Below, in pieces: positions 591 through 43,514 of a stretch of 64,000 nt of DNA. Below the pieces are notes generated by a model. That model had not been told where the DNA came from. It saw only the letters and a program-made list of their open reading frames with translations, and did no database searches. Position 1 is the stretch's first letter. Each line of letters opens with the position of its first letter. The stretch comes from Setoptus koraiensis (Eukaryota > Animalia > Arthropoda), in contig CM106586.1 in NCBI GenBank assembly GCA_048013815.1, forward strand, positions 17,236,001 to 17,300,000, in the 5' to 3' direction. A program made the translations under genes and the position numbers.

Positions 591-667
591 GGCCGAACGC
601 GGCCGAATGCGCCGAACGCGGCCGAATGCGCCGAACGCGGCCAAATGCGGACGAATGCGGCCAAATT
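591..667. repeat. Tandem repeat of ~9-10-bp unit GGCCGAAYGC
   Basis: ggccgaacgc ggccgaatgc gccgaacgc ggccgaatgc gccgaacgc ggccaaatgc ggacgaatgc read directly. Confidence 0.9.
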
Positions 668-1952
668 AAAGCCGCTCGGCTCAGCGAGCGGCCCGCTCGC
701 CGGCGGTCGTTTTGTTTTTTCATCAGCGGCCGCCTTCGAAACAACAATGGCGTGCAATATGGCCGGCAATATCGGTGAGGCTTGCGGCAACCGGCCAACC
801 GGCAACTAATAAACAGCGCCCGGCAGCACGTAGCACGTACACAATTGCATAGCTCTCCATCTTGGCTGCATGAGCCCGTGGCATCATTAGGATGACACCG
901 GCCGCTTCTCGGCGCTCGTGGCGAGACCATTCTGGTTAGCCAGTTGGCGGACAGCGATTGCCGGCGAGCAGCCGCTGGCGTGCTCGTTGGGCGCCGGCCC
1001 GACAGCGCGTTATTGGCGCTCTCGGTGGTGGCTAGTCTAGCCACCGCAATGAGCAGTTTGGGCCCAAGTGAGATTTGGATAATTCATCATCGCCACTGGC
1101 CGGCCAGAGCGGGGGCCAGCGAGCGCCAGAGCGGGCGCCAGCAAGCGCCAGAACGGGGCCAGATGGGGCCCCACCGGCCGGTGTGTGCCGTGCGCCCGTG
1201 ATTGTGTCAATTGATTATGATTTATTTTACACTGTTCGCGCTCAATATAAATCAATATGCTCAAATGGCCTGTCGCTCGCACATTCGAACCAGCGGGCAC
1301 CTTGGGGCCGGCGCCGCTGCCAGCCAACGGCCAGCATCGTCAGTTCCAAGTCGGATTTCGGCAGTGCATTGGGCCAAATGAACTGCCCAAATCCGACGAT
1401 TGTCTCGCAAATGCACCGCCGAGACGTTTCGCGGGGCGCCAACGTTGGCGGGCTGCAGCGAGCGAGCGCCCCAGTTGCCGAGCAACCATCACGGTGGCGC
1501 CTCGAGCGAGCGCCTTCATGAACTGGCGGCCATAATTATGGCCGCATAGTTAACAAGATAAACAGTGTCTGCCGGCCAGTTAATGTTGTCCGCTCGCTAT
1601 TCGCGGCCCGTTGACCAGCGCTATCCGCCCTTTCGCTATTCAATGAATTCGTTGGATTCGTCGGGCACACTGATAGCCATCGGTGTGCTCGTTGACCGTT
1701 ATTCGTCCGAAGCGAAACGTTGAATGCAGCGCATTTCGGATTGCGATTTTGGAATTTCGAATTGCCAAATGCGAAATGCCAAATACGAGCCCCAATTTGC
1801 AACGCGCGATCCGAAAATCGCAATCAGGGCGGCTCATTTGGGTTTTCGGTCCGTTGCGGAACCGGCCCGGCGCCGGCCGCAACAATGGACGCATTCGTTG
1901 GCCTGTCGAGGCCCGTCGCGGCGGCCGGCGTGACCATTTGATCTATTTGTCC

Positions 1953-2036
1953 TCGGTTTGTCGGTCTGTCGGTCTGTCGGTTCGTCGGTTCGTCGGTCTG
2001 TCGGTTCTTCGGTTTGTCGGTTCGTCGGTTTGTCGG
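1953..2036. repeat. Tandem repeat of 8-bp unit TCGGTYYG, about 10 copies
   Basis: tcggtttg tcggtctg tcggtctg tcggttcg tcggttcg ... read directly. Confidence 0.9.
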
Positions 2037-2266
2037 CCCGTCCGCTTGTCGGCGGCTCATTTGCCCGCTCGGCTCAGTGAAACGGTGTAAAATTGTCGGC
2101 TTTGCGCGCCCATGTCGCCATATGCCCATATCGCACGGGCCCCATATGCCCGACGGATCGCTCGCCATCAGGCGCCTCAGACGCCTCAAATGCCTCAAAT
2201 GGTGGCCATCGGATACCAGCGGGCGAGCGATTTAATGGCGCCACTGAATCCGTGTAACATGAGGCT

Positions 2267-2370
2267 CGCCCGCTTGCTTTATCCGCCCGCTCGCTTTATC
2301 CGCCCGCTCGCTTTATCCGCCCGCTCGCTTTATCCGCCCGCTCGCTTTATCCGCCCGCTCGCTTTATCCG
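2267..2370. repeat. 17-bp minisatellite CGCCCGCTCGCTTTATC x6
   Basis: Six consecutive copies, the first with one mismatch. Confidence 0.95.
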
Positions 2371-3747
2371 CTGGCCCGCGCCGAGCCAATCGCGGGCCCT
2401 TGTCGGCAAAAGTCGATGGCCCGCTCAGACGGGTTCGTGTTGCCGCGCCACACAAAGGCAACACCGTCTATCTGTCGATCGATCGATAGCATCTCAAGTT
2501 AAACGACCGCAAGCATCGCGGCCGCTCCCACAACCGTTATGGAGCGAGTTATGAAACGGCCGGCCGCCACCGCCGCCGCCGCGTATTAACGGGCCGGCCG
2601 GCTGCCATGAGGGGCCAAATTAATCATCTGGGCCCCGCTACATCTTTATATCCGTCTATTTATTTATAGCCGGCCAGTGGCAGCGGCCGATCGTTAGGCT
2701 CAATCTTGGACAATTGTTTGGCGCGACGGTTTTGTTGTTGCTGGTCGCCGTTGGGGCGCCATTGAGCGGCAACGCTCGCCGTGCCGCTTGCCTCCTCCAA
2801 TTTCAGCCGCCAGCTCGCTTTATTGGCTCGCTAATCTCGCCGAAGAAGCGGCTGAAGGAAGAGAACGGGCCCCCACCCCAAACCGGTTAAAACCGGTGCG
2901 CTTTAAACGGGTGCGCGTTGCTCTTTTTGTGCCCGACGAAACGGTCCGCGGCGGCCGCGGGTTAAATGGCGAACGGGAGGCGCCGAAACTCAATTGCATT
3001 CAATTGGCTCACAGCGGCTTAGCTCAAGTTGATCAGTTTTCCGGTGGCCGGTTATTGCGCACTTTGCACACATCAGCGCCGAGCTGCCAGTGGCGCGGCT
3101 ACTTGCGAATCGGCCCGGCCGGCAGATTGCGGCCGGCCCGCCTAGCGGCAGCGAGAGGTAAAACGGCCTGCATTGGGGCCCCTCGTGCGGCCAGCGGGCA
3201 AATCTTTACCTTGCCGCCCCCCCCCCTCACACGCTGTTAGCTGTCAGCGTGGCTGGCGCAGATAGCTGCTGCGGGGCCCCAGATCGGCCAACTCGATACA
3301 ACTGGCCAAACAATGGCGCGGCCCCAATGAATAACGGGGCCGTTGTTCGGAGGGGCCTCGGGCGAGGCGCGCGTTTTTCCTGCGCGACGTGTCGTCATGA
3401 TTCGTGTCGGTGCGCTTTTATTTGCGCGCGCGGCCGCACCGTCTCCCGGCGCGCTTCTGTTCGGGCCGGCCGCTGCGCTACGCAGCAGGCACGCAGCCCA
3501 AACGGGACCTAACCATATCTGGCCACTGGTCTGATATGGTCGGATATATCTGACCAGCGAGCGTGGTATTTATGATGATGTCTTTATCCGCTGTGTAATG
3601 TCATGTTGCAGCGACTGGCCGCCAGTGACGCCACCAGTGGGGCCGCCGGCGGACAGAGACAGATTATTGGCGGGTTGGCTTTGATTTGTTTGTTGCATCA
3701 GTTGGGCGCAGTTGGGGCGAGCTTTTGTTTTTGTTCGCGCCAGCGCG

Positions 3748-3846
3748 GGCCCCAAACTGGCGTCGCCGAGGCTGGCCCCAAACTGGCGTCGCCGAGGCTG
3801 GCCCCAAACTGGCGTTGCCGAGGCTGACCAGAAAACTGGCGGCGCC
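3748..3846. repeat. 26-bp minisatellite GGCCCCAAACTGGCGTCGCCGAGGCT x3 plus a partial copy
   Basis: Copies at 3748, 3774 and 3800, then a degenerate copy from 3826. Confidence 0.95.
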
Positions 3847-5264
3847 AATATCCAGCAATATCAAACTGGGCTGTTTATGGCGTTTTATTGCCACGGACAT
3901 GTACCAATAGATCACTCATCGGAGCGGCAACTATTTCATCGTGCCATTTCGTACAAATCTGTCTCTGATTGCGGCCCGGGCGGGCGCCGCTGCCGCTCCG
4001 ATTTGTTGCGGCGCGCGCCGATCCCTCACATGCCGTCATGTTGCGCTGCCCGTCTTCCAGTCCGACGTGCGTTCGGTGTGTGCTATCCAATACAGTATTG
4101 ATGATCTATTGATGGTGAATATTTCTCGGCGCGTCGGATCGTGGGCCCACTTTGGGCACCTCCGCTGGCCAATTGCCGCATTCGGGCGATCGGGCCAGCG
4201 GGCCAGCCACCGATAGCCGCGGCGCACACACGCCAGATACAGTGGCGGCGCATATATTTGCAGTGGCCTGTGTAAACTATAGACGTCGGATATAGATGAC
4301 GGGCACTGGTAAATAATTCATGAGCCAATCAGCGTCACGTTGTCTAAAGCTTCTTTTTCACCTTGAATACTCTTGCGCGCTCGCTCACTGGCCACTCGCC
4401 GGGCTGCACTCACTCGCCAGACCTGGCCGGACCCCTGATTTTTCGGGGGCCTCTCAGCCTCAGAGTCTCAGGCGAGAATTGGCCGAATTAGCTGCCCGAT
4501 GATCGGCGGCATCGCACACCTACCGGCTGTTCTGGTCAGATAGTAGCGCACCAACCGACACACTGCACACTGATCAGCGCACGCAACGACTCAACAAAAG
4601 GGGCCCCATTCTGGTGCACCAATTCTAACTCCACTCAATGCTGGCCGAACAACAATGGCCTGTCAGTGGTGCGTTGCCTCCGCCAGTGAGCTGCCCCTCA
4701 CCTGCTCACCTGCTCACAGGGGCGATCCACTCACTCAAATAGGCACACGGGCATAATTAGATAATCATCACTGTCGCTCGCTCACAATGAACGCCACTGA
4801 CCAATAATTAGCACCACTATTACCTGATAACGGTGCACAATGGCCAACGCTGTCGCCCGTCTCACGCACAACGTAATAATAACGATACCAGTAGGTACCA
4901 GTAGTTGCACCAGTTGTTGTGTGTGTGCGATTAGTCTGTCATCATATCCGCTTAATATGTAATTTTTCCATCCCAAACTGAACTTATCTGGCGAGCGCCC
5001 TAGTGGCGCATTGCTGTGGCCAACTTTTCGATGCGCTCCTCTTTACCTATTAGGCTGTTCGGGGCCTCTTTGCACTGGCCAGACTATTTATAGACTTGCC
5101 ATTTGGCTGCTTCATTATAAGTAGTTGCACTGAAATTTAATTCGCGCATCGGTGACTCAGATCGCAGTGCACAACATTGGCGCTTTCTTCATCAACGAGC
5201 GAATCGATTCAATATCTGGCCGATGCGATTCGAAGCGAAATAAAAATTGAACAAAATTAGAACG

Positions 5265-5394
5265 ATGATTGCATTGGTTGATGGTTTCGTCGCGACATTC
5301 TGACGCGCGCGATGCAAACGAAATGCGATTCAAATGTTACGTATGCAAGCCGAATTCGGGCCCGGCCATTGGACATCATTTTTTGCTTGCATAA
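5265..5394 (+). pseudogene. Decayed 5' fragment of an eighth member of the six-Cys secreted family
   Basis: gattgcattggttgatggtttcgtcgcgaca matches the G1 signal-peptide DNA aattgctctggttgtttgtttcgtcgcaaca (IALVDGFVAT vs IALVVCFVAT). After a frameshift, atgcgattcaaatgttacgtatgcaagccg (MRFKCYVCKP) matches G1 MRFKCSVYEP. A stop follows at 5392-5394. Confidence 0.7.
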
Positions 5395-5592
5395 CACTTG
5401 TTATGCGAGTAAACGTTATCTCAGATAACTTATCTGTGACTGTTCATCTGCATAACTATTGCGACATCGTTGATTGGTCGAAATAGCTGAATGATGGCTC
5501 GGTAATCATTTCCGCCGTGCATGGCTGCAGTGCAGCTTTGAGGGCCGGATCTAGGTTGGACTCCATGAGTCCAACATATCGGAGCCTGATAC

Positions 5593-5845
5593 GAAATGCA
5601 ATCTATTCTTAGGTTCGAGCATGGCATTCCTGCGACTATCAAATGCCACGGTGGATGCGCTCGCTACCTCGCTCAATTTCTATATTTAGCGTCTGAGAGT
5701 GCCCAACTCGGCTTCACATTCTGCTCTCGGTTGAAGCTAGCCTAAATCCCTGTATAATTTCAATTTTTTGTGGTTTTTACAGCTTCAAACAGCATTAAAC
5801 CCGATTTCGGTAGATGCCATCGATCAGCACATAGACAAATATTCA
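5593..5845 (+). promoter_or_regulatory. Shared upstream module of the secreted family (G1 copy): block A GAAATGCAATCTATTCTTAGGTTCGAGCATGGCA, block [12 protein letters not shown], block C AGACAAATATTCA
   Basis: Block A-like sequence lies at 5593, 6886, 8707, ~10291, 11570, 12870 and 14608. Blocks B and C recur in the same order upstream of G1 and G3-G7. Regulatory function is inferred. Confidence 0.5.
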
Positions 5846-5976
5846 TTCTATAGTTGATAAAAGTCGAAGCGAATCAGTGGATAAATTTACCGTGAATCTC
5901 AACCTAAGCACAGATAAAATTGTGATCAGAAAACGTTTATTTGACCCATCAATTAACATTAGTAGAGAAACCTAAA

Positions 5977-6555
5977 ATGACAATGATAAGTGCGGCAATT
6001 GCTCTGGTTGTTTGTTTCGTCGCAACAACAACAGCTACCAACGAACTCGATAGAAACGCAATCAGCGATATGCGTTTCAAATGTTCCGTTTATGAGCCAA
6101 TTGAATTCGGCAATGGCGAAATGCGTTGCCCGAAGTTCAAAACTCACATTCCGGCCACTATTTTATATAAGGGATTGGAACAATGTGTGTGCTATTATCA
6201 CCAGCACTCATTAGTTTGGGCCGCAATGGTACCTAACAGTATCAGACATTTGCTTGCCTCGCTACAGCAGCCGATATATGAATTCACGGGATTGGAATGG
6301 AGACTGTTTGGCAAAACACTGGACAGTGAGGAGGCAGACCAAGAGGCGCAGAAGCTTGCAGATTCATTGGGGCAACGTAGCGACGTTGAAAGTTTGACAA
6401 CGGATTGTCAGATATTAATGAATCACAGCGAGACTGAGGTAAACAGACTTCTCAACTATGTGGGAATTCCTCACATGGAGCTTGTGGTCGCACAAAATGA
6501 TAGCAACTTCCTCACCTTGCTCAACGCTTTCACGATTTGCGAGAGTTTCGTCTGA
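5977..6555 (+). CDS. Secreted six-cysteine protein, novel tandem family member G1 (192 aa)
   Basis: Intronless ORF. The first ATG (5977) precedes a hydrophobic signal peptide MTMISAAIALVVCFVATTTA. Motifs FKC, CVCYYHQHS, YEFTGLEW, DC and ELVVAQNDSNFLTLLNAFTIC are shared with six neighbours. Confidence 0.9.
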   Translation: MTMISAAIALVVCFVATTTATNELDRNAISDMRFKCSVYEPIEFGNGEMRCPKFKTHIPATILYKGLEQCVCYYHQHSLVWAAMVPNSIRHLLASLQQPIYEFTGLEWRLFGKTLDSEEADQEAQKLADSLGQRSDVESLTTDCQILMNHSETEVNRLLNYVGIPHMELVVAQNDSNFLTLLNAFTICESFV

Positions 6556-7142
6556 CAATCCGATAGTCAGAAATATGACCTAAGCCAACCCTTGCGAATG
6601 TCGATTTCATAAAAATACCATAAAAAGGTTTCAATTTGAGCAGATAATCCGGATTTTTTTCCAAGAAGCTTTTCTATGATTTCGTCGAGTAGCTCGACAC
6701 TTGCACGCACGATATAATTGAGCTGGCAGAGTGAATTATCTTCGTCAATGATGCATCGTTGAAAATGGGACCACAACCCTAGTTTTCGGTCTAGGCGTCT
6801 TTGGGTTAAGTAGTAGTGGGATCTCATCCTATTTGAAATCGAAAATTTCATTTTCACTCCGGCCATAGCGGGCAGAGGCTGATTTGAAATGCAATCTATT
6901 CTTAGAATGGGCATTGCTTGAATGCGAGATTTCATCTAGCGACGCTTGCATATTTATAGCTTTTATAGCTTTTTTGATCGCCACTGCGGCACAAGGTTAT
7001 CATTCAACTCGAATCCATTGTTGTTTTCGCAGCTCGTTATATTCGTCATCACATTCGTCTCATGACATTTCATCAAGCGACCACAAAATCTTCGAATGAC
7101 ATCCACACAAAATTCACCAAGTCGATTTTGAAAATCAATACA

Positions 7143-7709
7143 ATGGGCGTTATTTCATCGCTAGTCCTCATGGTTTTTCTGGTGGGCGCTGCCGAGGCCT
7201 CTTACGAACAGCAAGTTGGCAGAAACACACAATTTAAATGCTCTTTATACGAGCCATCTGACTTCGATGACAACAAGCGTTGTCCGACGCGCGAAGTCGC
7301 TGCAACATACTCACAAATGGAGTCATGTGTATGCCACTATTTGCAGCATTCATTTGTTTGGGCCGCAATGACACCCATTAGTGTCAGAAATTTTTTGTCC
7401 GAAGTGAAAGATCCAATTCATGATTTATCTGGACCGAATTGGAGAATATTTGGTCAGGCAGTTGGCAGTGAAGCATCACCCGAACGAGCCGAGGACTTTC
7501 TTAAGCGTGTATTCAAATCTCGTAGTGCGATTATCAATTATGAACTGCTAAGAATAGATTGTAAAAAATTGAAAGAGGAAGCCGGCAAACAGATCGAAAG
7601 ACTGAAAAGTTTAAACCCGGCTGGTCACCTCGAGCTCCTGGTGGCGGCCAACGACAACAATTTCCTAACTCTGTTGGATGGATATGTGCTATGCAAGAAA
7701 TATTTTTAA
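7143..7709 (+). CDS. Secreted six-cysteine protein, family member G2 (188 aa; G2/G7 subgroup)
   Basis: Signal peptide MGVISSLVLMVFLVGAAEA; FKC, CVCHYLQHSFVWAAMTPISVRN, ELLVAANDNNFLTLLDGYVLC; AATAAA at ~7857. Confidence 0.9.
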   Translation: MGVISSLVLMVFLVGAAEASYEQQVGRNTQFKCSLYEPSDFDDNKRCPTREVAATYSQMESCVCHYLQHSFVWAAMTPISVRNFLSEVKDPIHDLSGPNWRIFGQAVGSEASPERAEDFLKRVFKSRSAIINYELLRIDCKKLKEEAGKQIERLKSLNPAGHLELLVAANDNNFLTLLDGYVLCKKYF

Positions 7710-8130
7710 TAAGCGTGGGCCACCAGCCAGTGGGTATGACAGGTCTCACCTGTTCAACTAACCATGTCGAGTTTGATCAATAGTAGAGTAGCATATCGGG
7801 TGATCGATCAACTTCACAAACATGTCACTCGACACTGTCTAGTCGACAGTAATGCAATAAATAAATTTTCTAGTCACTTCAGATACCGTTCGTTCACTGC
7901 GCTCACTGGATAATGATCCTGTTTATCGTCATGTACAGCGTGTAATAATCAGAGTAGTAGAGATGTGATGACAATCAATTTTCGTGTCTTGCCACCCCCG
8001 GTAGCCGTAGTGTTGATCAAAGCGAGCAAAACATGACTACCGAAAACCAAGCTGTCATTGAGTACAATCGTTGACAGAAATTTGGTAGACGTTTTTCTGT
8101 CTCAGCGTCATGAATTTGATGGCCGGAAAT

Positions 8131-8450
8131 TAGGGTGGAGATTTTCTTGGTTTAAATCATGATTTAAATCAAATGATTTAAATCAGTGGTTTCAAACAAC
8201 ATAAATGTGGTCACAATTGAAGATGTGATTAAAATTTCGGTTTCTCTGGTTTTTGTCGGCTTGATTTCAACCACAGCGATTTTATTAATAGTAGGTTTAA
8301 TTCCTAAAAAATCATGAAAACCGTGATTTAAATCAAGAATAAAGAAAACAATTCGACCATTCAGAGTTCAAATTCTGAATTTCAGACCATGAATTTGAGT
8401 TTAGCATGACTCTACAGCTTACTTATTTAAGTAAAAAAATCTCGACGCTG
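8131..8450. mobile_element. Non-autonomous hAT-type DNA transposon (MITE), 320 bp
   Basis: Imperfect 18-bp terminal inverted repeats (tagggtggagattttctt vs reverse complement cagcgtcgagattttttt, 14/18). Flanking 8-bp near-direct repeat ccggaaat (8123-8130) / ccggaagt (8451-8458). Internal GATTTAAATC repeats. 8-bp target-site duplications and YAG-starting TIRs are hAT hallmarks. Confidence 0.65.
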
Positions 8451-9102
8451 CCGGAAGTGTACATGACCAGGCGAAAAACGTGTTGAGAGGGCTGAGGATG
8501 CAATTCGCCAATCGGAAAAAGTTCGAATTGGGTATATATTAGTGCCGACAATTCAATAGATCTGCAGAATATTAATATTAATTGCAAGTTTCATCCAATG
8601 CCACGGTGGAAGCTTTTGCTATTCTTGCCGTAACTTAATTGAGGGTACTCTATAGTTCGATTCATAGCAAAAAAAGTTGAAATTCCCTATCACTGGAGCG
8701 AGATGCGAAATGCAATGTATCCTCAAGTTCGAGAATGGCATCCCTGCGACAACATTCAAGGTTATTCTGGATATCATGCAATGCCACAGTGGATGCTTAT
8801 GCTGTTTGCAATAATTTCTATATTTAACCCTCTGGGAATGTCTGACTCGGACTGACGTCTCAATATCCATCTCAGCCAGTTCAGATCCTTGTACGATTTC
8901 CAAAGTTTGCAGCTTTATACTGCATGAGACCTTTTTTGGTTACAAGTCATAGATCACAATATAGACAAATATTCAATTTCTGTTCGTAGAATCGAGGGAT
9001 AAACTAAGTGAAAAGAATCGAATCTCAACATAAGGACAGTTAAAATTGTCCCCAGAAAACATTGATAGGACCTATCAATTAATATCAATAGAGAAACGAA
9101 AA

Positions 9103-9675
9103 ATGACAATGATACGTGCGGCAATTGCCTTGGCTGTTTGTTTCATCGCAGCAACAACCGCTACTAACGAACTCGATAGAAACGCAATCAGCGATATGCG
9201 TTTCAAATGTTCCGTATACGAGCCTCACATGTTCAACGATTATAATTGTCACAGTCCATCGTGGGAATACAGCCATCCTACCGAACATTATCATGCTGTG
9301 GAAGCATGCGTATGCTACCATTACCAGCACTCGTTGGCTTGGTTCTCGATGGTGCCCAACAGTGTCAGACATTTACTTGCCGAGATGCATCGTCCATATT
9401 ATGAATTTACGGGATTGGAATGGAGAGAGCTAGGCGAAACGTTGGACAGCGACGAAGCATACGAAAATTCTCAAGAACTCAAGAAAACATTGCAGCTACG
9501 TGAAGACGTTGAACTGCTGAAAAAGGATTGCAATAAATTGAAGCTGCATTCTCAGATGCACCTGCAGAAACTCTACAAGATGGATTTGGAGCATTTTGAG
9601 CTTGTGGTTGCGGCACACGATAACAACTTCCTCACTTTGCTCAATGGCTTCATGGTTTGCAAGGCCTTTTTCTGA
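9103..9675 (+). CDS. Secreted six-cysteine protein, family member G3 (190 aa)
   Basis: Signal peptide MTMIRAAIALAVCFIAATTA; CVCYHYQHS; ELVVAAHDNNFLTLLNGFMVC. Confidence 0.9.
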   Translation: MTMIRAAIALAVCFIAATTATNELDRNAISDMRFKCSVYEPHMFNDYNCHSPSWEYSHPTEHYHAVEACVCYHYQHSLAWFSMVPNSVRHLLAEMHRPYYEFTGLEWRELGETLDSDEAYENSQELKKTLQLREDVELLKKDCNKLKLHSQMHLQKLYKMDLEHFELVVAAHDNNFLTLLNGFMVCKAFF

Positions 9676-9735
9676 AGTTCTGATAACCACGGCGCAGGGG
9701 CAGATAGGCAGGCAGACCGAAACGACGAATGATTA

Positions 9736-9793
9736 GAAACAACGAAACTATCGAAACAACGAAACTATCGAAACAACGAAACTATCGAAACAA
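9736..9793. repeat. 17-bp tandem repeat GAAACAACGAAACTATC x3.4
   Basis: Three perfect copies plus a partial; further GAAAC(A/G)ACG-like copies at ~9719, ~9829 and ~9844. Confidence 0.9.
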
Positions 9794-10667
9794 GTCGAAA
9801 AAGTTTCTATGGGAATGACGAAAAATCAAAACAACGATTTGTCGAAACAACGACCGATTGAAATTACAAAGCGGGTCGCGTGCACTGCTGATTCAAGCTG
9901 ATTTCGTAAAATAATAACTATGCGTAAATAACAATTAATTGAGATAGCCTTGCTGATTGATCGGCTGAAGGTCTCGCGCTCTCTTTATCTCTGTCGACTA
10001 GTGCTACTAGCTACTCACGCTGCCGTCTCGTAGCAGTCTGATTCTTTTTTCTGTTGACCCAGTGCGGCCTCACATTAAGTGACAAATCGTAACATCCATT
10101 TCTTTGATAAAATATTGTCCGCGGATCATTGTCGTAAACCAACATTCGATGATAGCACCGATATCAAAAGTGAGTAAGAAGTGCAAATCATCAAAACATG
10201 TAAGGGCAATACCCTTGCTATTGTCGGTCGGTATAAATGCCTGGCTGACAAAACTGTGATAGCTCCAAATGGTAGCTTCGAAATTCGAGCAACGCAATCT
10301 ATTATTATGAGGTTCGAACATTCCTGCGACAATTCGCTGCCGACGTTACTCTGGCTGCAGCTTCTATATTTAGCGTCTGAGAATGGCTCGGCTCTACGTT
10401 CGACCCCCATTGGATTTAGCCTAAATCCCTGTATACTTTCGATTGTTTGCGGTTTTTGCAGCTTTTTTACAGCGCTAGAGCCCATCTCGGTAGACGCCAT
10501 CAATCAGCACATAGACAAATATTCAATCTATGATCGATAAAACTTGTATCACAAAAGAGAATCCGAGGATAAATTGAGCGTGGCGAATATAAACTTAAAA
10601 ATAAATAAAATCGTGCCTGGAAAACATTGATTGGACCTATCAATTAATATCAACAGCGAGACGAAAA

Positions 10668-11237
10668 ATGACAACGATACGAGCGGCAATTGCCTTGTCT
10701 GTTTGCTTCATCGCGACAACTGCTACTAACGCGTCTAATGGAAACGAAGCCATCAATATGCAATTCAAATGTTCCAATTACAAGCCTAGACCATTCAACT
10801 CTTATTATTGTCAGACTACAGCTTACAATGACAATTCTCCAACTGAATATTATAAAGATGTAGAAGAATGCGTGTGCTACTACTATCAGCACTCAATAGC
10901 TTGGTACACCATGGTATCCAACCCTGTCAGACATTTACTTGCCGAGATATACCCGCCATTTTATGAATTTAAGGGTTCGGAATGGAGAGAGCTAGGAGAA
11001 AAGTTGGACAGCGACGAAGCATACGAAAAGTCTCAAGATCTCAAGCAAACATTAAAGCTACGTAGCGATATTGAAAAGTTGAAAAACGACTGTCAAAGAT
11101 TGGTACGTCATTTTTCAAACCAATTACAGAGACTCAAGATTGGTGCAATTTCTCACATGGAGCTTGTGGTGGCTGCCCATGATAACAACTTCCTCACTTT
11201 GCTCAATGGCTATTGGGTTTGTAAGAAGTTGGTTTGA
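10668..11237 (+). CDS. Secreted six-cysteine protein, family member G4 (189 aa)
   Basis: Signal peptide MTTIRAAIALSVCFIATTA; CVCYYYQHS; ELVVAAHDNNFLTLLNGYWVC. Confidence 0.9.
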   Translation: MTTIRAAIALSVCFIATTATNASNGNEAINMQFKCSNYKPRPFNSYYCQTTAYNDNSPTEYYKDVEECVCYYYQHSIAWYTMVSNPVRHLLAEIYPPFYEFKGSEWRELGEKLDSDEAYEKSQDLKQTLKLRSDIEKLKNDCQRLVRHFSNQLQRLKIGAISHMELVVAAHDNNFLTLLNGYWVCKKLV

Positions 11238-11264
11238 TGTTATAATGACCAATGCAGAGAAGTA

Positions 11265-11282
11265 GAAATTGATATCCCTCGT
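11265..11282 (+). promoter_or_regulatory. Conserved 3'-flank/UTR motif GAAATTGATATCCCTCGT
   Basis: Copies 28-63 nt after the stop codons of G4 (11265), G5 (12559), G6 (13918) and G7 (15463). The G4 and G7 copies are identical over 18 nt. Function is inferred. Confidence 0.45.
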
Positions 11283-11958
11283 CGGCATGGGTTTCTACTC
11301 GACCGACTGCAGTCTCTACTATTTCATCTGAAACCGGAATCTCCAGTTTGATTCCAGTGGTCAGAATGAATACAATTAGTATGCGACTAAGTGACGATCG
11401 AACTGCTAACTCGATGCTTGATTCATCAAAACTAGATTCTGATGAATAATAGCTATTTCAAATAAATGATTATTATTGTGAAATTAATGACGCGGAGTTA
11501 CCAACACCAGTTGAGGGTATCAATTCATGGCGAAAAAAGTTGAAGTTCCCTATCACTGGGGCCTGATGTGAAATGTAATCTATGCTTAGGTTCGGGCAAG
11601 GCACCTCTGCAGCAATATTCTAGATCATTCTAAGTATCATGCAATGCGACAGTTGATGCTTATGCTATTTTTGCCGTAATTTCTATATTTATCACCTGAG
11701 AATTCGTTCGGATTGACGTTTCGAAAACGATTGCAGCCAGATCCCTGCACAATTTGCAAAGTTTGCATTTTTATAGAGCATGAGACCTGTTTTGGTTACG
11801 TGTCATCGATCACAATATAGACAAATATTCAATTTCTGTCTGATGCAAATTGAAAGACAAACTGCGAAAAGAATCGAATCTCAACATAAGCACAGATAAA
11901 ATTGTCCCCAGAAAACATTGATCGGACCTATCAATTAATATCAATAGAGAAACGAAAA

Positions 11959-12531
11959 ATGACAATGATACGTGCGTTGATTGCCTTGGCTGTTTGTTTC
12001 ATCGCAACAGCGACCGCCACTGACGTGTTTGGTGGAAACGAAGCCAGCAATATGCAATTCAAATGTTCCAATTTCAAGCCTAGACCATTCAACTCTTATT
12101 ATTGTCAGCCTACAACTTACAATAACAATTTTCCCACTGAATATTATAGTGATGTAGAAGAATGCGTGTGCTACTACTATCAGCACTCAATAGCTTGGTA
12201 CACGATGGTATCCAACCCTGTCAGACATTTACTTGCCGAGATAAAGCCGCCATTCTATGAATTTACGGGTTCGGAATGGAGAGAGTTAGGCGAAGAGGTG
12301 GATAGCGACAAAGCATACGAAAAGTATCAAGCTCTCGGAAGAACATTGAAGCAACGTAGCAATAATGAAAAATTGATAAAAGACTGTCAAAGATTGGTAC
12401 ATCATTTTAAGCAGCAGCTAGAGCGACTCCCGATGAGCGGTATTCCTCGCATGGAGCTTGTGATTGCTGCCCATGATAAAAACTTCCTCACTTTGCTTAA
12501 TGGCTATTGGGTTTGCAAGAAATTGGTTTAA
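11959..12531 (+). CDS. Secreted six-cysteine protein, family member G5 (190 aa; G6-type N-terminus on a G4-type body)
   Basis: The first 38 residues are identical to G6; the remainder closely matches G4. Confidence 0.9.
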   Translation: MTMIRALIALAVCFIATATATDVFGGNEASNMQFKCSNFKPRPFNSYYCQPTTYNNNFPTEYYSDVEECVCYYYQHSIAWYTMVSNPVRHLLAEIKPPFYEFTGSEWRELGEEVDSDKAYEKYQALGRTLKQRSNNEKLIKDCQRLVHHFKQQLERLPMSGIPRMELVIAAHDKNFLTLLNGYWVCKKLV

Positions 12532-13258
12532 TGTTCTAATTACCACTTCAGAGAAGTAGAAATTGATATTTCTCGTCTACATTGGTTTCTACTCGGCCGA
12601 CTGCAGTCTCTACTATTTCATCTGAAACCGGAATCTCCAGTTTGATTCCAGTGGTCAGAATGAATACAATTAGCATGCATCTAAGAGACGATCGAACTGC
12701 TAACTCGATGCTTGATTCATCATAACTAGATTATGATCAATAATAGCTATTTCAAATAAATGATTATTAATATGAATTAATGACGCGGAGTTATCCGTTA
12801 CCAACACCGGTTGAGGGTAGCAATTCATGTCGAAAAAAGTTGAAATTCCCTATCACTGAGGCCTGGTGCGAAATGTAGTCTATCCTGAGGTTCGAGCATG
12901 GCATCTCTGCGACAACATTCTAGATTATTCTGAGTATCATGCAATGCCACAGTAGATGCTTATGCTATTTTTGCCGTAATTTCTATATTTATCGCCTGAG
13001 AATTCTTTCGGATTGACGTTTCAAAAACGATTGCAGCCAGATCCCTGCACAATTTGCAAAGTTTGCAACTTTATAGAGCATGAGACCTGTTTTGGTTACG
13101 TGTCATCGATCACAATATAGACAAATATTCAATTTCTGTTTGATGCATATCGAAAGATAAACTGCGAAAAGAATCGAATCTCAACATAAGCACAGATAGA
13201 ATTGTGGCTAGAAAACATTGATCGGATTTATCAATTAATATCAATAGAGAAAAGAAAA

Positions 13259-13855
13259 ATGACAATGATACGCGCGTTGATTGCCTTGGCTGTTTGTTTC
13301 ATCGCAACAGCGACCGCCACTGACGTGTTTGGTGGAAACGAAGCCAGCAATATGCAATTCAAATGTTCCAATTACAAGCCTGTTGAAATTCAAGATAATG
13401 GTTGCAAGAATTTCTGGACCTACGATCCAGACAGGCCCTTTGATTATTATCGAGCCATGCTAAACTGTTTGTGCTACTATTATCAGCACTCATTGCAATG
13501 GGGCGCCATGGTGCCCAACAGTGTCAGACATGTGCTCGCCGAGCTACAGCCTCCCGTGTATGAATTTACGGGAATTGAATGGAAGCAACATGGCGAAACA
13601 TTAGACAGTGCAGCGGCAATGCAGAAGAGAACTTATATACGAGGCTTCGTCGAGCAACGGATGATCCCACTGAATCCTGCGTTGAAAGAGGACTGTAAGA
13701 TATTGTTGGACCGTTCCAATGAGTACATAGAGAGACTTTTCAAATTGAAATCAATTCCTCACGCTGAGCTACTGGTGGCCGAAAATGATAAAAACTTCCT
13801 CCTCTTGCTTAGTGGTTCAATAGTTTGTGAGGAACTCATCTTTCCTAGGGACTGA
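13259..13855 (+). CDS. Secreted six-cysteine protein, family member G6 (198 aa)
   Basis: Signal peptide; CLCYYYQHSLQWGAMVPNSVRH; ELLVAENDKNFLLLLSGSIVC. Confidence 0.9.
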   Translation: MTMIRALIALAVCFIATATATDVFGGNEASNMQFKCSNYKPVEIQDNGCKNFWTYDPDRPFDYYRAMLNCLCYYYQHSLQWGAMVPNSVRHVLAELQPPVYEFTGIEWKQHGETLDSAAAMQKRTYIRGFVEQRMIPLNPALKEDCKILLDRSNEYIERLFKLKSIPHAELLVAENDKNFLLLLSGSIVCEELIFPRD

Positions 13856-14174
13856 TAGTGGAAAGTTGCAAGAACTTGAGCCAGAATAACCAATGCAAAA
13901 AGGCAGAATATTAACAGGAAACTGATATCCCTCGGCTGATTCGAGTGGCCAGAATGATCATAAACGAACGAATACAATAAACTGAAAGATGATTAAACCA
14001 ACTAAATTACTGAATCATATATCATAAATAGATTTTGACGAATAATAGATATAAATTATCCTCCCTTTTTTTTCAATTTTTCTCTTGGAGTCTCATCAGA
14101 CATCTTGCAATAAAGCGCGGGTTTGACAACGGCCAGTGCATACAATTATTTCAATCTCGTTGATTGGTCGAAAT

Positions 14175-14490
14175 CAGCCGGCTTAAATGGTTTTAACCAC
14201 AAGCCTTTTGATTTCAGAAATAAAGGGCATTCTCTGCCAATAGGCCTAACATGCCACTTTGCCAGGAATATAAATGCCTTAAAATGCCTCAAAAAGCCAA
14301 AATTCAGTTTAGAAAGCACATATGCCATAGAATGGCGGAATTGAAGGCATTTTAAGGTACAAGAATGACTCAAAATGCAATTTAAGGCATGCCCTTTTCT
14401 ATTTCTGGAAAGTGCCCATTTAGGGCAACCGGCATTAATTCAAAACCTGCCTTAAATGCCTTCAATGACTGAATCTATGCAGGCACACTA
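14175..14490. mobile_element. 316-bp insertion with an 8-bp target-site duplication, probably a hAT-type MITE
   Basis: The uninterrupted homologous site upstream of G1 reads cgttgattggtcgaaatagctgaatg (5468-5493). Here it is split, with gtcgaaat at 14167-14174 and 14491-14498. The insert has internal inverted repeats (14341-14357 vs 14450-14465) and AAATGCC/GGCATTT motifs. Terminal TIRs match poorly (cagccggc vs tagtgtgc). Confidence 0.55.
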
Positions 14491-14834
14491 GTCGAAATAG
14501 CTGAATGATTGGTTGTGTAACTATTTCCGCCGTGAATGGCTGCAGTGCAGCTCTGAGGGCCGGATTTACGTTGGACTCCATGAGCCCAACACATCGGAGC
14601 CTGATACGAAATGCAATCTATTCTTAGGTTCGAGCGTGGCATTCCTGCGACAATCCACTGCCACTGAGGATACACTCGCTAACTTGCTCGACTTCTATAT
14701 TTATCGCCCAAAAATGACTTGACTAAAAAACTTGGCTTCACGTTTTTCTCTCGGTTTAACAGACAAATATTCAATTGCTCGTTGACATCCATAATTTCAT
14801 ACGCGTTTTAAAGATTTTGCTAATAATCAAGACG

Positions 14835-15407
14835 ATGCGCAACATTCCATCGCTATTTTTTTTCGTTTGCCTCATCAGCGTGGTCAAGGCATCGATTGGA
14901 CAACAAGTTGCTCAAAATTTGCAATTGAGATGTCCGAGCGAGCGTGTTGGCCCTTTCGACTGGAGGCGCTGTCCGGATAGTACAGACAGTGATCTCAACG
15001 ATAAAACATATTGGAATCAACTGGAGTCATGTACATGCCATTTTTTGCAGCATTCATTTGTTTGGGCCGCTATGACACCAATCAGTGTCAGAAACTTGCT
15101 CGCCTCTTTAGATCATCAACCTTATGAATTATCCGGCTTGAACTGGACACAATTCGGCCAGCCGATCGGTAGTGTTGAAGCTGATCATGAAGCCCGCGAC
15201 CTGGATAAGAAGTACAATTTCAAATACCGTGCTGATTATAGCCAAGTAAGAATGGATTGCGAGAAAATGGTCGCTTACGCACGGAAACCTTTAAGTAATT
15301 TGAAGAAGGTGCACGCAACAATTCGTGCTGATCTTATAGTGGCAGCGCACGATGAAAACTTTCTAAATTTCATGAATGCTTTCATTATCTGTGGTAATTA
15401 CGTTTAA
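14835..15407 (+). CDS. Secreted six-cysteine protein, family member G7 (190 aa; G2/G7 subgroup)
   Basis: Signal peptide MRNIPSLFFFVCLISVVKA; LRC, CTCHFLQHSFVWAAMTPISVRN, DC, DLIVAAHDENFLNFMNAFIIC. Confidence 0.9.
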   Translation: MRNIPSLFFFVCLISVVKASIGQQVAQNLQLRCPSERVGPFDWRRCPDSTDSDLNDKTYWNQLESCTCHFLQHSFVWAAMTPISVRNLLASLDHQPYELSGLNWTQFGQPIGSVEADHEARDLDKKYNFKYRADYSQVRMDCEKMVAYARKPLSNLKKVHATIRADLIVAAHDENFLNFMNAFIICGNYV

Positions 15408-16203
15408 TAGGCTGCATCGCCTAATAGACGAAAACCAGTCAGTGATGAACTGCATAGGAGAAGAAATTGATATCCCTCGTAGATATCGGTTTTTTCACGA
15501 CAAGCCAAGTCTGATTAGCGAAGAGAGATGATGAAACTGATAACTGAATGACGATGAAAATAAATTATGATTAATGAATGATTAAGTTTGCTTGTTATAG
15601 CTGGGCTCCTCATTGACTTTACAAAATGGATTTTCCAATCCGGGTCTGTTTGCGTGAATTGCTTGGACAAAAGATAATTAAACTTTCAGCAACCGAAGTG
15701 AAAATCAGCGAGAAAAACAAAACTTCTTTTGGAGATTGAAAAAACTCAAATCTTCCAGATCCAACCAGATGTCTCCATTGATGATGTTCAGAGATGTTGC
15801 TCAGGACTCGCGCAGAGAATTCTATTCCGGTGAAATTTTGAGACTGAGCGACTTGAGTTTCATCAAGAGAAAAAAAAAATTTTTTTCTCATTTTTTTTTT
15901 TCTGAAATTTTCTTTCCGGTCTCAGCTGCTTGCCGAAACGACTGAAAAAGGTTGATTTTCGGGGAAGAATTCCTCCGACGAAGCAAGCAATCTTTCTTGG
16001 TGATGCTCAGCTTAGTGCGCCAGCTCCAGCAATGAATTCTCAAAAAATCGGTGCGATAATCGAGCTTACTGGCAGGATTGCCGGAAAAAAAAATCTCTGG
16101 GTTGCATGAGATTGGACCGAAGTCTTCGTACTTGATTTCGACACTAGTTTATGACGGCGCCAGCTATCGCAACAATGTAAGACGAAGATATCAATATCAT
16201 GCG

Positions 16204-16370
16204 ATGCCCGAGAAGAATCTGCGTCGCTTCTCTGGTGAAACCAGAGACGACTTTGTTGTTTGGAAATCCGAAGTGTGCCGGAGCACCGAGCAGCCGGACC
16301 TAGAGTCGCTTTGTCGAGCTAGCGGGCGCGCGTTGTGTCAACTGGATGCTCGCCGCACTAATTTGATACA
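16204..16370 (+). mobile_element. Possible degenerate Ty3/Gypsy Gag (capsid, PNMA/Arc-like) fragment
   Basis: LRRFSGETRDDFVVWKSEV...LCRASGRAL resembles the LxxFSG-x-E/D-F-x-x-W ... LxGxAL pattern of Ty3/Gypsy capsids. Resemblance by eye only; no pol or LTR seen. Confidence 0.3.
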
Positions 16371-19300
16371 TAATGTTGCCAGGAATCAGCCTGAACAAGT
16401 CAATATCAATCGAGCATCGATACACACGCAAAATGGTAGAGATAATGGATACGCCAAGCAAATGGGTCGATTCGGATGTGGGCCAGCGCGGCTTGCTGTT
16501 GGAAGCCGAATAACAAAAGCCGAGCCAAATTATCCCCTATCTTTGGGCCGTATTAATATTGTTGCATCATTTATCTTAGTCTAAGCCAATTGTGCGCGTT
16601 AGTTGTCTCAGCACTCGCACTGACTGGCTTGTTGTGGCGCCAATTTAGCTAGCTAGCGAAGTTACCTAGTGTGCCTAGTCACATGGGCTCTGGTAGGAAT
16701 AAGTTTGTCGGTTTATAGTTGACTGACTGGCGGCTCCCCTCCCCTCCCGCCACTCGATTTATCTCTAATGGGTGCCCACTAGACGACGAGTATTATTCAG
16801 TGGAGGCCCAAAATTGTGGCGAACGGCGGATAAACGGCGCACACTTTGCGCTGGGCCGCCTCAGCACAACAACGTGTTAGTTAGTAAACAAAAATTTGCC
16901 AGCGGTGGCTTCGTTAGTCGACTAATCTTGGCCGCCATTACGAGCAGCGTATATTATCAGCCAGCCAGCCAGCCAGCCCAAAACGCGAGTCAACAGTGGC
17001 GGGCCCTCCAACGGGAGCTTGCCAACGGGAACTTGCCAACAGTAGCTTTGCAACAGTAGCTTTCCGACAGTAGCTCTCCGACGGTGCCTTTGCAAGGGGG
17101 CCCGCCAAGGCGGGGGTGGCAGCGTGCTGGAGCACTCGAGATGTGTAGAGAGTTATATTATTATTACTATTATTATTGTTATTGTTATAAGAAACGCAAC
17201 AACAACAACAACGACGACGACGACGACAATCGTTTTAGTTAATATCCAGCTGCCCCCTTGCAGCTCGGCAACGGGGCACGCGCTGCCAGCCGCCGCCAGG
17301 CCGCCGCTTATTGAAATGGGGCCCGAGTCGGCCAGCGAGCCTCCAAAGCAAACACACCCACCTCGGCGAGCCAGGTTAATATTCAATTGGGTCTGGCCGT
17401 CTCAAAGTGGAGCCGCTTTTTTACGACAACACTGCGCCGTGCGAGTCGTACTGGGGCCGCGCACTGGGGCCCCGTAGCGGGGCCCGTTGTGGGGCATTCG
17501 CTGTCGCGTTGTTTATTCGCCTTGTTTGTCTGTTTGCTTGGTTCTGTGAGTGTGTGCGTGTGTGTGTGTGTGTGTGTTTGTCTGCCAATGCCAATGACAA
17601 AAACAAGCCAGTAAAACAACAACGACGACACAAGCAAAATTGTGCGCGCAAAAACAAAGCCAACAAATGGGGCGCCGAGCCAATTGCAGAAACTAGATTG
17701 CTTTCGTTGGCATTGGGGTCCCATCGGCGGGGCCCCGAACGCTCGCTGATGTCCCATCAGCCCGATGCAGCGGGACAGGCCCGATGCAGTGGGACAGGCG
17801 CGCCGGCAAATCTATTTTTTAAATTTACTATTATTTCTGCCCTTCAATGCATTATAAATTTGGCCAGCGGTGCCCAGATAAAGCAGCCAGGCGATATGCG
17901 ATACACGATGTGCGACACGACATGTGCCTTATCTGTCGCTTGCCATCGCCAGTTCTCATTGTGCCCAATTGTTGGCGGGCCCAACGTGACAGCCCGCCAA
18001 CAAACAACAGCCTACGCTCTGGCGCTCTAATTTTATCTTGATTTCTTCATCAAGATCATTGTGTAATCTTGCAGCCTTTAGTTTTGTTTGTGGGCGCGTT
18101 TGTCTCACAGCGACGACGAAAATCGGCCCCCCCCGCCTGTCCAGCGTTTGTGCGAAGCGCCCCCTGGTTCGCAGCGCCACCAGTGTGCCGTTTTTCCGTT
18201 TGGGGCCCACGGGCGATGCGGGGCCCCAAATGGCCATGCATTCTGTTCGGTTCGGTTCGGCACGGCCACTCGCCAACTGGCAGCGAGGTAAGAGCTCCAT
18301 TGTGTGTGTGTATATAACATTAGCAGTTTAGCGGCGCCCAGAATAGCCAGACAGAATGGAAATGGACAAGAATTGGACGCCGTCTCCATTTATATATTTC
18401 ACTTTGGGGAGCTATATTTCATCTTCAGCCCGCAGCGCCGGCTCAATTCGCGTCGGGGCTCGATTCACGTTGGGGCCCCTTGGCCGGGTTTCGGCTGGGG
18501 CCCCAACGCAATGCTGGCGGCCATTCTTTTTTCTGGCGCTCCGGCCGCTGTGTGTGCGATTGTAAAGAAAACTGACCATCATTAGGTTGCGGTGTCTTGG
18601 GCGCGTTAAGTGATTCCCGGCCCGTCGTGTTTGTTGTTGTCTATTTTTGCGATTCCAGCAAACACACAACAAGATATAACAAGATATATAGAGGAGATAA
18701 AGAAAAGAAGAGGGTGCTCCATTTGAGTGGCTCGATGCTTTTTGTTGGCGCTGTTGCTGTCGCCGTTACCGCTGTTATTGGCGCGTCTTATTGTCCGTCG
18801 CTGTTAGGACAATCGCGACGCGGGCCCAATCCCTCGGTCGTGTGTTTGTGTCAAGTTTTGCGACTCACAGAATGGAGCGAGAGAGAGAGAATAAAAGAAT
18901 AAGGCGTTCGAAATGGCCAGACTGCCACTCTCACTCGGCTGGCCGGCCACTTTGGCCCCTTGCGAGGGCACGCGCACCACTCAATACGCGGCGACATGTC
19001 ATTTTGGGGCCGCGCAACGTCGCTCTAATGCCGCCGATATTCAAACGAGCCGGCCCCGACACAAACGCGACATTAAGTCGGATGCGGCTCGGCCGGCCAG
19101 CAAGACCGACTGGATAAGCCGATCTTTTCTCCCGTCCGCTGCCATTTCCCCAATGCTCGCGATGCCTCTCTGAATCGGACACTCTGGTGTGTCCGACGTC
19201 GCCCGTGCCGCCCGTGCCGCCGACGATGTCCGATTTGCGCCCTAGCGGAGGCCAGATTAGCGTGTCAAATGATTGAATTAGAAATGGAGTGGCCTCGTTT

Positions 19301-21290
19301 ATTTTGCATGCAAATGCTCAAAACAGCCAGCCTGGCCGGCCCGTCGCGGGGCCGCCGTCCGCGTTTAAACTGCGACCTTTTTGTCGCTTCCTCGTCCTCA
19401 CTCCGACCGTCCACTGTGACGCTGCAAATCACTGGCCGGCCGGCCGGCCGGCCAGCTTACCAAATAGCCGCTTATTAATTCAGCACGCGGGCCCCACAAG
19501 ACAGCCAGCCCCAAGACGGATAATCCCTCTTAATGGGCGGCCTGGCGGGCTAATTCCGGGCACTAAATGAGCTTTGTTTGTTTCTGATTTCAGTTGACAT
19601 TCCGTCGGCAACATTCAGTGATTTTTGCCATTTCGGCAGTCCGTCGCGCCAGTCGGACAGTCAGGTTTGTTGTAGTCGACATTGATGAGATGACAAATCT
19701 GGCGCGACGCCAAACAGACACTGGACCAGCGGCGATTTTGCTGACCAGTCCCAGCAGAATGGTCACTCAATCGGGGCTGCACGTGTTTTCGGCAGCCCGT
19801 CTGGCGCGTCGCACGCGGACAAGGAGCGCAAAAGTTCAAGAGCAAAAAAAAGAGCCGGCCGCGATCAACGTTCACATGCGACCCATCGGGGCGCCCGACG
19901 AGGGGCGCCCCCCGTGGCAGTTGGGCCAGTTTCGAGCTGGCCCCAGAAGCGGCCCCAAACAAAAATGTGCGCGCGCTCCAATTTACGCTTAGCTGCTTAT
20001 CGCGAACGGCACGCTTCACTTAATTTTACAATTGGGGACCCTCGCTCTCTCTCTGTGCCCTTCACTTATCAAGTCAATATCTGGTATGTATTTGACTTTT
20101 ATGAAACGGCGACTTTTATCTGGGGGCCGCCGCTCCATAACTTAGGCCCACTGTGCCCATGTCAACTGGCTTGGCGACGCACAAAAATGACGACAAACAC
20201 CAAAACAAACGGACCAATATTTTCCAGCAATGCCAACAAACTGACAATAAACTGCCAGCCACCGAGTGGGAGCTGCGTGCCCAGACTTTGGGCCCCAAAG
20301 TGTTATGTGGGGCCCGGCGCGTCTTTTGTCACTGATTTCGCGCAATTGTCTGGCCGTGTCACCGCCAGACAATTGCGATTGCGGCGACAATCTTGGGGGC
20401 CGCTTTCGGCTTTCGCTTTTGCTCGACGCTCACACTGGTTATTTATTCACACTGGCAACTGTGGGCCTCGTGACAACGGGGAATTAAAACACAATTATGT
20501 CGCGACGCGACAACAATTGGGCCCAATCTCGATTTATCTTCATTCAATTGTTCGTCAAGTGACGCGAGCGCCCCTGACGGCCGGCTTCCAATTATAATAT
20601 TGGCCGGGAAAGGATGATTTGGGGCCGACGAACCGGTTTTAGTTTGCTCAATGTTTGCAACAGCTCAAGTTGCCATAGTTGCTTTAGGGCGACATCCCCT
20701 TCTTATCCCCGCCATAATGAGTGAGTTGTTGTCGGCGTTTCGTGCGATGCGATATTCGCATTAGCGCCACTGGCGACGCCAATTGAATTGGGGCCCGAGC
20801 GTGTTTGTGCGCTGTTGCTTATGCGTGCCTGCGTTAGTTAGTTTTGTCTGCTGTTTGCGATTATTATCTGCAATTTATCAACAAAATCAGCCAACTTGAA
20901 CTGTGTGCTATATGATTATTACATGTATTTGCATACGCAACAGCGGCGTGTGTAATCACACAACAAGAAACAACGACAGCGACGATAATAGATTCTCAAC
21001 AGAGATAAATGGCGCTCGTTGTAGATTGATGATTTTATCTATTATTCACTTCCTATTGCGTTTGTTCGTTTGTTTGTTGATCTCTCTCTCGCTCTACACA
21101 CACGCCTGACGTATATCTGGCTGGTGCGCGCCAGAGTGGGCCGGCCAGTTTGTTCGGGGTGCATGATTTGAATTCGTGACGACGCCGAAACATGCTACGG
21201 GAATGGGGCCCAATTTCGCTGTTGTGGCTCGTTTAATTTACAATTGGTTGACCGGACCGGGCGCCAGCTAGGGGGCGCCCTGTCCGCTCA

Positions 21291-21330
21291 CCCCTCAATT
21301 GCAACGGCGCGCGCCGTTGCAATTGAGGGG
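21291..21330. repeat. Perfect 40-bp palindrome
   Basis: cccctcaattgcaacggcgc|gcgccgttgcaattgagggg is its own reverse complement with no spacer. Confidence 0.95.

Positions 21331-43472: not shown

Positions 43473-43514
<42 letters not shown>

Follow-up and report, generated by a model that had tools for sequence, protein, structure and literature searches.

Among the described systems closest to the locus considered here is the SSSGP-1 cluster of the Hessian fly, in which seven genes lie within 15 kb and combine a conserved promoter and signal peptide with diversified mature parts (PMC2955719). The present locus is a tandem array of seven genes encoding small, apparently secreted proteins with six cysteines. 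It lies in a stretch of 64,000 nucleotides (nt) of the Setoptus koraiensis assembly GCA_048013815.1 (contig CM106586.1, positions 17,236,001 to 17,300,000), all of which was analysed and which is called the window below. In both systems, seven paralogs, mostly in tandem, are packed into ~10-15 kb; the mature coding part is less well conserved than the signal peptide and the promoter-proximal flank; homogenisation between copies has been invoked; and the family is taxon-restricted and without homologs. However, the two have no sequence relationship. The SSSGP-1 genes contain an intron, encode smaller proteins, and are under strong positive selection, whereas the genes of the array are intronless, encode mature proteins of ~170 amino acids (aa) with a conserved core, and have ratios of nonsynonymous to synonymous divergence (dN/dS) below 1. 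Furthermore, salivary expression has been shown for the SSSGPs, while for the array it is a candidate reading.

A second system, the BICYCLE family of aphids, is defined by paired, widely spaced CYC motifs and by genes of 5-25 microexons (10.1101/2020.10.28.359562). Like the array proteins, the BICYCLE proteins are predicted to be secreted, have a mass of ~20 kDa, lack homologs, are encoded in clusters of paralogs, and carry conserved motifs of the Cys-x-Cys type. However, each array protein has one CxC rather than a CYC pair, just as a first-pass annotation of this DNA had stated, and in all seven genes as well as in the related loci from other organisms, the whole coding sequence is contained in one open reading frame (ORF), with no microexons. 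Protein searches revealed no similarity to BICYCLE. Both the SSGP and the BICYCLE genes have been reported to be under strong diversifying selection (PMC2955719; 10.1101/2020.10.28.359562).

The insect odorant-binding proteins (OBPs) and other six-cysteine helical carriers provide a third comparison, as they too are secreted, helical, and encoded by multigene tandem families with six conserved cysteines. In the classic OBP arrangement, three residues lie between the second and third cysteines and eight between the fifth and sixth. The corresponding intervals in the array proteins are 19-20 and 42-43 residues; in addition, the array domain is larger, is predicted to include a beta-hairpin, and gives no match to PBP_GOBP (PF01395) at an expectation (E) value <=1. 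Kinship with the saposins was rejected because there is no Pfam match and because the conserved domain spans ~165 residues rather than the ~80 of the six-cysteine saposin domain. The NPC2/ML domain, which also gives no Pfam match, was rejected because it is a beta-sandwich, while the fold predicted for the array proteins is mainly helical. The earlier view that the family is distinct from OBPs, saposins, and NPC2 is thus borne out by profile, spacing, or fold.

The array belongs to a familiar kind, the lineage-specific tandem families of small, secreted, cysteine-stabilised proteins. Within that kind, we favor, as moderately probable, the reading that its genes are taxon-restricted and co-regulated and encode extracellular proteins that act as binders, not as enzymes.

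The seven genes

The seven co-oriented, single-exon ORFs of 188-198 aa are on the + strand and span 5977-15407 (ORF listing), with a start-to-start spacing of 1.17-1.96 kb. The start of each gene was taken as the first ATG preceding the hydrophobic segment; the ORFs as listed run from 5941 to 15407. All seven proteins can be aligned from end to end, and their pairwise identity is 27-80%. The genes, together with a short relic upstream of them, are as follows.

5319..5351, + strand: coding relic, not a gene; 85% identity (blastn) over 33 nt to 9192-9224
5977..6555, + strand: g1, 192 aa, intact single-exon gene
7143..7709, + strand: g2, 188 aa, divergent subtype, without the upstream 15-mer
9103..9675, + strand: g3, 190 aa
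10668..11237, + strand: g4, 189 aa, modelled at full length with AlphaFold2
11959..12531, + strand: g5, 190 aa, a mosaic whose upstream part is like that of g3 and g6 and whose body and 3' flank are like those of g4
13259..13855, + strand: g6, 198 aa, with a 5' flank and first ~40 codons near-identical to those of g5 and a diverged remainder
14835..15407, + strand: g7, 190 aa, the most divergent copy; mature part modelled with AlphaFold2

The first-pass annotation had placed a tandem array of seven co-oriented, intronless genes at 5265-15480. All seven are indeed intact single-exon ORFs, but the genes themselves occupy only 5977-15407. There is no eighth gene in 5265-5976, which contains the 33-nt relic and upstream sequence common to other copies. 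The relic corresponds to the region around the first conserved cysteine; the same motif is present in a small ORF, and it falls below the tblastn threshold. The start of g2 is ambiguous: translation could also begin at an in-frame ATG at 7062, which would place 27 more residues in front of the signal peptide. Directly 3' of the g3 stop, at 9718-9800, is a 17-nt tandem repeat of 3.4 perfect copies, which is not seen after the other copies.

These ORFs are not products of chance, because a relative from an unrelated metagenome matches the ORFs checked by tblastn with E values of 3e-24 to 6e-27, and because dN/dS is below 1. When the same relative was used as the tblastn query, no additional copy was found anywhere else in the window. 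The array is AT-rich (~40% GC), and the sequence on either side of it is GC-rich (52-61% GC over 1-4000 and 16000-20000). Nevertheless, the GC content of its genes (0.41-0.45) and their GC content at third codon positions (GC3; 0.44-0.52) match those of neighbouring host genes, and the array has no repeats in common with the rest of the window. A foreign or viral origin was rejected given this host-like composition and the lack of relatives among viral contigs or in BFVD.

Relatives of the family

The first-pass annotation had recognised no family, and none was found by Pfam, by PDB sequence, by word-indexed search, or by predicted fold. With the seven window proteins and four relatives (see below) as queries, Pfam-A yielded nothing better than E 0.024, and all of these matches were far below the gathering cut-off. 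A sequence profile search of the PDB gave no match, and two word-indexed searches of 5.8 billion proteins returned nothing useful. Nor did Pfam, PDB sequence, or Foldseek searches produce a match to a characterised housekeeping family, the outcome that had been named in advance as speaking against a new family.

When 1.84 billion cluster representatives were scanned exhaustively with an HMMER profile, four full-length relative clusters did emerge, all of them unannotated: P0001, P0002, P0003 (with cluster-mate P0078), and P0059. The four clusters trace to just two sources, an assembly in Logan (SRR33593474, with three contigs) and a metagenome in ENA. The relatives are single ORFs of 186-211 aa with the same six cysteines. 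For P0001, the 216 aa of the public gene call (L001:1184-1834) result from reading through a stop; the ORF on the contig ends at 186 aa, as in other members. No relatives were found in two scans of JGI metagenomes or in a scan of viral contigs (IMG/VR), and none were detected among the proteins of eriophyoid-like assemblies or annotated mites in the libraries searched. An exact look-up of g4 in public assemblies gave no record, and a search of the literature found no described mite family with these features.

The same HMMER scan gave ~70 other matches, which cover only profile positions ~98-123, many times each, and which are FG-GAP_2 propeller proteins. The FG-GAP_2 (PF14312) repeat unit does resemble the hairpin of the family at these positions. 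However, kinship was rejected because the resemblance is limited to a single hairpin motif (for example, window positions 10959-11036); in the array proteins, one copy of this motif lies in a helical domain rather than in a propeller, and there is no Pfam match to FG-GAP_2 even at E <=1. The family is new as a sequence family and, as judged from the models described below, apparently as a fold too.

The encoded proteins

In each of the seven proteins, the N-terminus consists of a short polar or basic stretch, a hydrophobic core of 12-14 residues, and then small residues at -3 and -1. The best 12-aa Kyte-Doolittle mean in this region is 2.3-3.0 across the seven, and no later membrane-like segment is present in any of them (best 19-aa mean <=1.17). 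These features suggest soluble proteins that would be secreted by way of a cleaved signal peptide. The mature proteins are 19.4-20.8 kDa, with an isoelectric point (pI) of 4.95-6.9 and no conserved N-glycosylation sequon.

Exactly six cysteines, in aligned columns, are present in all 11 mature proteins examined (the seven of the window and four relatives from other organisms). Approximately 13 residues separate the first and second cysteines, 19-20 the second and third, one the third and fourth, ~71-75 the fourth and fifth, and ~42-43 the fifth and sixth. Within this framework, all seven window proteins share one CxC followed by QHS..W..M, a central hairpin motif, DC, and D.NFL...C. The leader, the six cysteines, and the motifs are therefore where the first-pass annotation had placed them. 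In the alignment of 12 sequences, only the start Met, the six cysteines, one Trp, one Arg, and one Asn are invariant. There is no invariant catalytic set of the His/Ser/Asp type among these sequences, which argues against an enzyme. Given that so few positions besides the cysteines are invariant across species, the proteins may well be non-enzymatic binders.

Structures were predicted with AlphaFold2 for full-length g4, using a 12-sequence alignment, and for the mature part of g7, using an 11-sequence alignment. The predicted local distance difference test (pLDDT) and predicted template modelling (pTM) scores were 80.5 and 0.75 for g4 and 83.5 and 0.81 for g7. The order of elements is identical in the two models: a loop region containing the first and second cysteines, three helices, a beta-hairpin, and four helices, with the CxC carried by the first helix. 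Foldseek searches of the PDB with the two models gave no significant match (best E 1.9 and 0.17, TM <=0.2), nor was there a significant match in BFVD (best E 1.4). The top Foldseek matches of the g7 model, to nuclear-receptor ligand-binding domains, were rejected as noise (E 0.17-1, TM 0.15). This combination of AlphaFold and Foldseek, which had been recommended as a check, points to a helical domain with a hairpin that has no significant counterpart in either database.

Selection and recombination among the copies

Selection on the array was assessed by the method of Nei and Gojobori, using pairs with unsaturated dS and, for windowed counts, 20-codon windows across the five closer paralogs. 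Values of dN/dS range from 0.19 to 0.60 across the measurable paralog pairs and are all below 1; for the youngest pair, g4 and g5, dN is 0.117 and dS is 0.261. The windowed ratio of nonsynonymous to synonymous differences per site (pN/pS) is 0.29-0.91, with no 20-codon window above 1. Its minima fall on the CxC helix, the hairpin, and the C-terminal helix, and its maxima on residues 20-57 and 117-141. These values indicate that the seven frames are under purifying selection, with two relaxed segments. Positive selection was not detected by either the pairwise or the windowed counts. Consequently, the description of the family as fast-evolving in the first-pass annotation needs to be tempered: the proteins evolve moderately fast, but within the limits set by these ratios.

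Conservation along the copies is uneven. When g1 and g3-g6 are compared, mean identity is highest in the block from -84 to +92 (counted from the ATG), at 78-86%, and in that from -202 to -143, at 78%. Over much of their mature coding region, these five genes are 56-62% identical, with two better stretches at 72-79%. Individual pairs change along their length. Identity between g5 and g6 is 84-97% from -450 to +132 and then falls to 53-75%. For g4 and g5, the pattern is the reverse, with 48-76% identity upstream and 73-100% from -24 through the 3' flank (86-100% outside codons ~124-173). Upstream, g3 matches g5. Such mosaic profiles place recombination breakpoints near the boundary between the signal peptide and the mature protein, and the 5' and 3' halves of the genes have thus been recombined by unequal crossing-over or gene conversion. 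In the first ~40 codons, the proportion of synonymous differences (pS) is low, at 0.24-0.30 compared with 0.5-0.65 elsewhere, which fits 5' halves that have been recombined in this way. The better conservation of the 5' flank and signal peptide is therefore a result of mosaic recombination between copies.

Irrespective of its function, the array illustrates clearly, on a small scale, how the 5' and 3' halves of genes are exchanged when tandem paralogs recombine. Recombination of this kind mimics the pattern of a conserved signal peptide joined to a diverged mature protein, which is often read as the mark of an effector.

A shared upstream sequence

An exact 15-mer is found upstream of six of the seven genes, 74-155 nt before the ATG. 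The window contains six on-target matches to it, compared with 0.61 expected. These are as follows.

5833..5847, + strand: 15-mer of g1, 144 nt before the ATG
8963..8977, + strand: 15-mer of g3, 140 nt before the ATG
10513..10527, + strand: 15-mer of g4, 155 nt before the ATG
11819..11833, + strand: 15-mer of g5, 140 nt before the ATG
13119..13133, + strand: 15-mer of g6, 140 nt before the ATG
14761..14775, + strand: 15-mer of g7, 74 nt before the ATG

Apart from the 15-mer, the flank of g7 is not alignable with those of the other copies, and the persistence of the 15-mer within it suggests constraint. The 15-mer is a candidate cis-regulatory element shared by the copies, and its presence suggests that they may be co-regulated.

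The host lineage

A gene for BCKDH E1-beta lies in the window at 59350-60636 on the - strand, with its conserved part in a single ORF. Its product is 67-75% identical to the counterparts in a wide variety of animals. A neighbour-joining tree places this protein as the sister of a clade formed by the protein of the eriophyoid mite Aceria tosichella and five Logan proteins, with support from 200 of 200 bootstrap replicates. The genes for these five Logan proteins are also intronless and lie on gene-dense contigs. The host probably belongs to the acariform mites, either within the eriophyoid lineage or close to it, a placement that comes from one gene and a distance method, with which long-branch attraction is possible. 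The mite host assumed in the first-pass annotation is thus plausible.

In the eriophyoid Aculops lycopersici, ~84% of genes are intronless (PMC7738191). Since intronless genes are normal in such genomes, the lack of introns in the array is uninformative about retroposition or transfer. It is real, as had been reported, but in a host of the eriophyoid type it is not special, and the BCKDH E1-beta gene of the same window is likewise a single ORF.

What the proteins may do

The reading favored here, a co-regulated family of extracellular, non-enzymatic binders, can be put in terms of a mechanism. Each mature protein, ~20 kDa and soluble, would be secreted and would fold into a single compact domain, built mainly of alpha-helices plus one beta-hairpin and probably held together by three disulfides. 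Tandem duplication would have enlarged the family, and unequal crossing-over or gene conversion would then have reshuffled the copies. Through the shared upstream element, the copies would be switched on together, in one tissue or at one stage. Outside the cell, the proteins would act as non-enzymatic binders of a ligand or macromolecule, with the paralogs differing in two variable segments that are presumably at the surface. The finding of the same length and the same cysteine pattern in the assembly of another organism and in a metagenome supports this reading.

Several points weigh against it. The 15-mer is missing from g2 and from the loci of other organisms, where a 7-nt core-like string was seen by eye and was not counted; moreover, common descent is part of the explanation for the 15-mer. 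The signal peptides were called by hydropathy and the -3/-1 rule rather than by a trained predictor. In addition, the argument for a non-enzymatic role, which would follow from missing conserved residues of the catalytic type, draws on only 12 sequences, and the AlphaFold2 alignments of 11-12 sequences are shallow, such that the model confidence may be flattering.

It is also possible, although doubtful, that the array encodes salivary-gland proteins that are delivered into a plant or animal host and alter its physiology. This idea comes from the general profile of the family only: secreted, disulfide-stabilised, taxon-restricted, and tandemly amplified, with variable surface segments. The host groups with the plant-parasitic eriophyoid mites in the single-gene tree, the layout parallels that of the Hessian-fly SSSGP-1 cluster (PMC2955719), and the secretomes of eriophyoids are largely lineage-specific (PMC7738191). 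However, unlike the SSGP and BICYCLE genes (PMC2955719; 10.1101/2020.10.28.359562), the array has no window in which dN exceeds dS, and recombination accounts for the conservation at its 5' end. Furthermore, no relatives were found among the proteins of the eriophyoid-like assemblies or annotated mites searched, and one relative comes from an environmental metagenome, which makes a free-living carrier of the family possible. A bolder version of the salivary idea, in which the proteins have an unseen fold, are secreted in the saliva of a plant-parasitic mite of the eriophyoid lineage, and have diversified as paralogs into a set of host-targeting binders, must be considered rather unlikely.

The mechanism by which eriophyoid mites manipulate their hosts is unknown (PMC7738191), and a taxon-restricted secreted family without a known fold is a concrete candidate for such manipulation by eriophyoid and related mites. 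Were the proteins in fact delivered in saliva, they would be among the first protein effector families defined for the eriophyoid lineage. On present evidence, the array adds another orphan secreted family to the many that are contained in arthropod genomes.

An internal role is unlikely. In that case, the proteins would be carriers or binders of the chemosensory type, functional analogs of OBPs or chemosensory proteins (CSPs) that bind small hydrophobic ligands in haemolymph or sensillar lymph. Such a role would suit small, secreted, helical proteins with six cysteines and several paralogs whose differences lie in surface or loop segments, and the very reduced sets of classical chemoreception genes in eriophyoids (PMC7738191) leave room for non-canonical binders. 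However, there is no Pfam match to PBP_GOBP, OS-D, or any lipid-binding family at E <=1, the cysteine spacing is unlike that of OBPs, the mature proteins of ~170 aa are larger than OBPs or CSPs, and the models have no fold match to helical carriers in the PDB.

A secreted, lineage-restricted, tandem, and moderately fast-evolving profile is also typical of extracellular proteins of other classes, whether reproductive (seminal or egg-coat), immune, gut-lumen, or cuticle-associated. Nothing favors any one of these, and taken as a group they have little probability: the array proteins are without the low-complexity or repeat motifs typical of structural proteins, and their near-neutral to acidic pI is unlike that of most cationic antimicrobial peptides.

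Finally, the intronless genes in an AT-rich island between GC-rich flanks and the short coding relic at 5319-5351 might suggest non-functional ORFs (chance frames, decaying pseudogenes, mobile or viral cargo, or a recent horizontal transfer), but this is extremely improbable in light of seven frames that are intact over ~190 codons with dN/dS below 1, a length and cysteine pattern conserved in other organisms, GC and GC3 equal to those of neighbouring host genes, the lack of relatives in viral contigs or BFVD, the lack of both repeats in common with the rest of the window and transposase-like ORFs, and bacterial promoter and terminator patterns that are only at chance level.

Neighbouring genes and other features of the window

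A very divergent teneurin-like gene with very large exons occupies 39333-51190 on the + strand and possibly begins at 25655. Its recognisable exons are as follows.

39333-41258, + strand: teneurin-like exon, Q/N-rich, ending in a membrane anchor
47276-48094, + strand: teneurin-like exon, weakly EGF-like
48152-51190, + strand: teneurin-like exon of 1012 aa with TTR, FN-plug, and NHL domains

The teneurin-like ORF scores 128 bits against Drosophila Ten-m and 116 bits against vertebrate teneurin-2, which is unlike the expectation for an insect. A separate, unassigned Q-rich ORF of 667 aa lies at 25655-27658. Farther downstream, an M1-aminopeptidase-like gene (52377-54374, + strand) consists of three ORFs in different frames. 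Its M1 N-terminal and ERAP1-like C-terminal domains were found, and the catalytic Peptidase_M1 match is absent between them; this gene could be a paralog that has degenerated or is non-catalytic; alternatively, part of the domain could be hidden by short introns. An ORF of 552 aa at 56106-57764 on the - strand has no Pfam match at E <=0.1. Scans for Rfam families and tRNAs found nothing in the window.

The GC-rich flanks of the array (1-5000 and 16000-24000) contain no ORF with a Pfam match, and no repeats are common to the two. Several minisatellites with periods of 8-29 nt are present in these flanks, and the GC-rich stretch downstream of the array includes a perfect 40-nt palindrome at 21291-21330.

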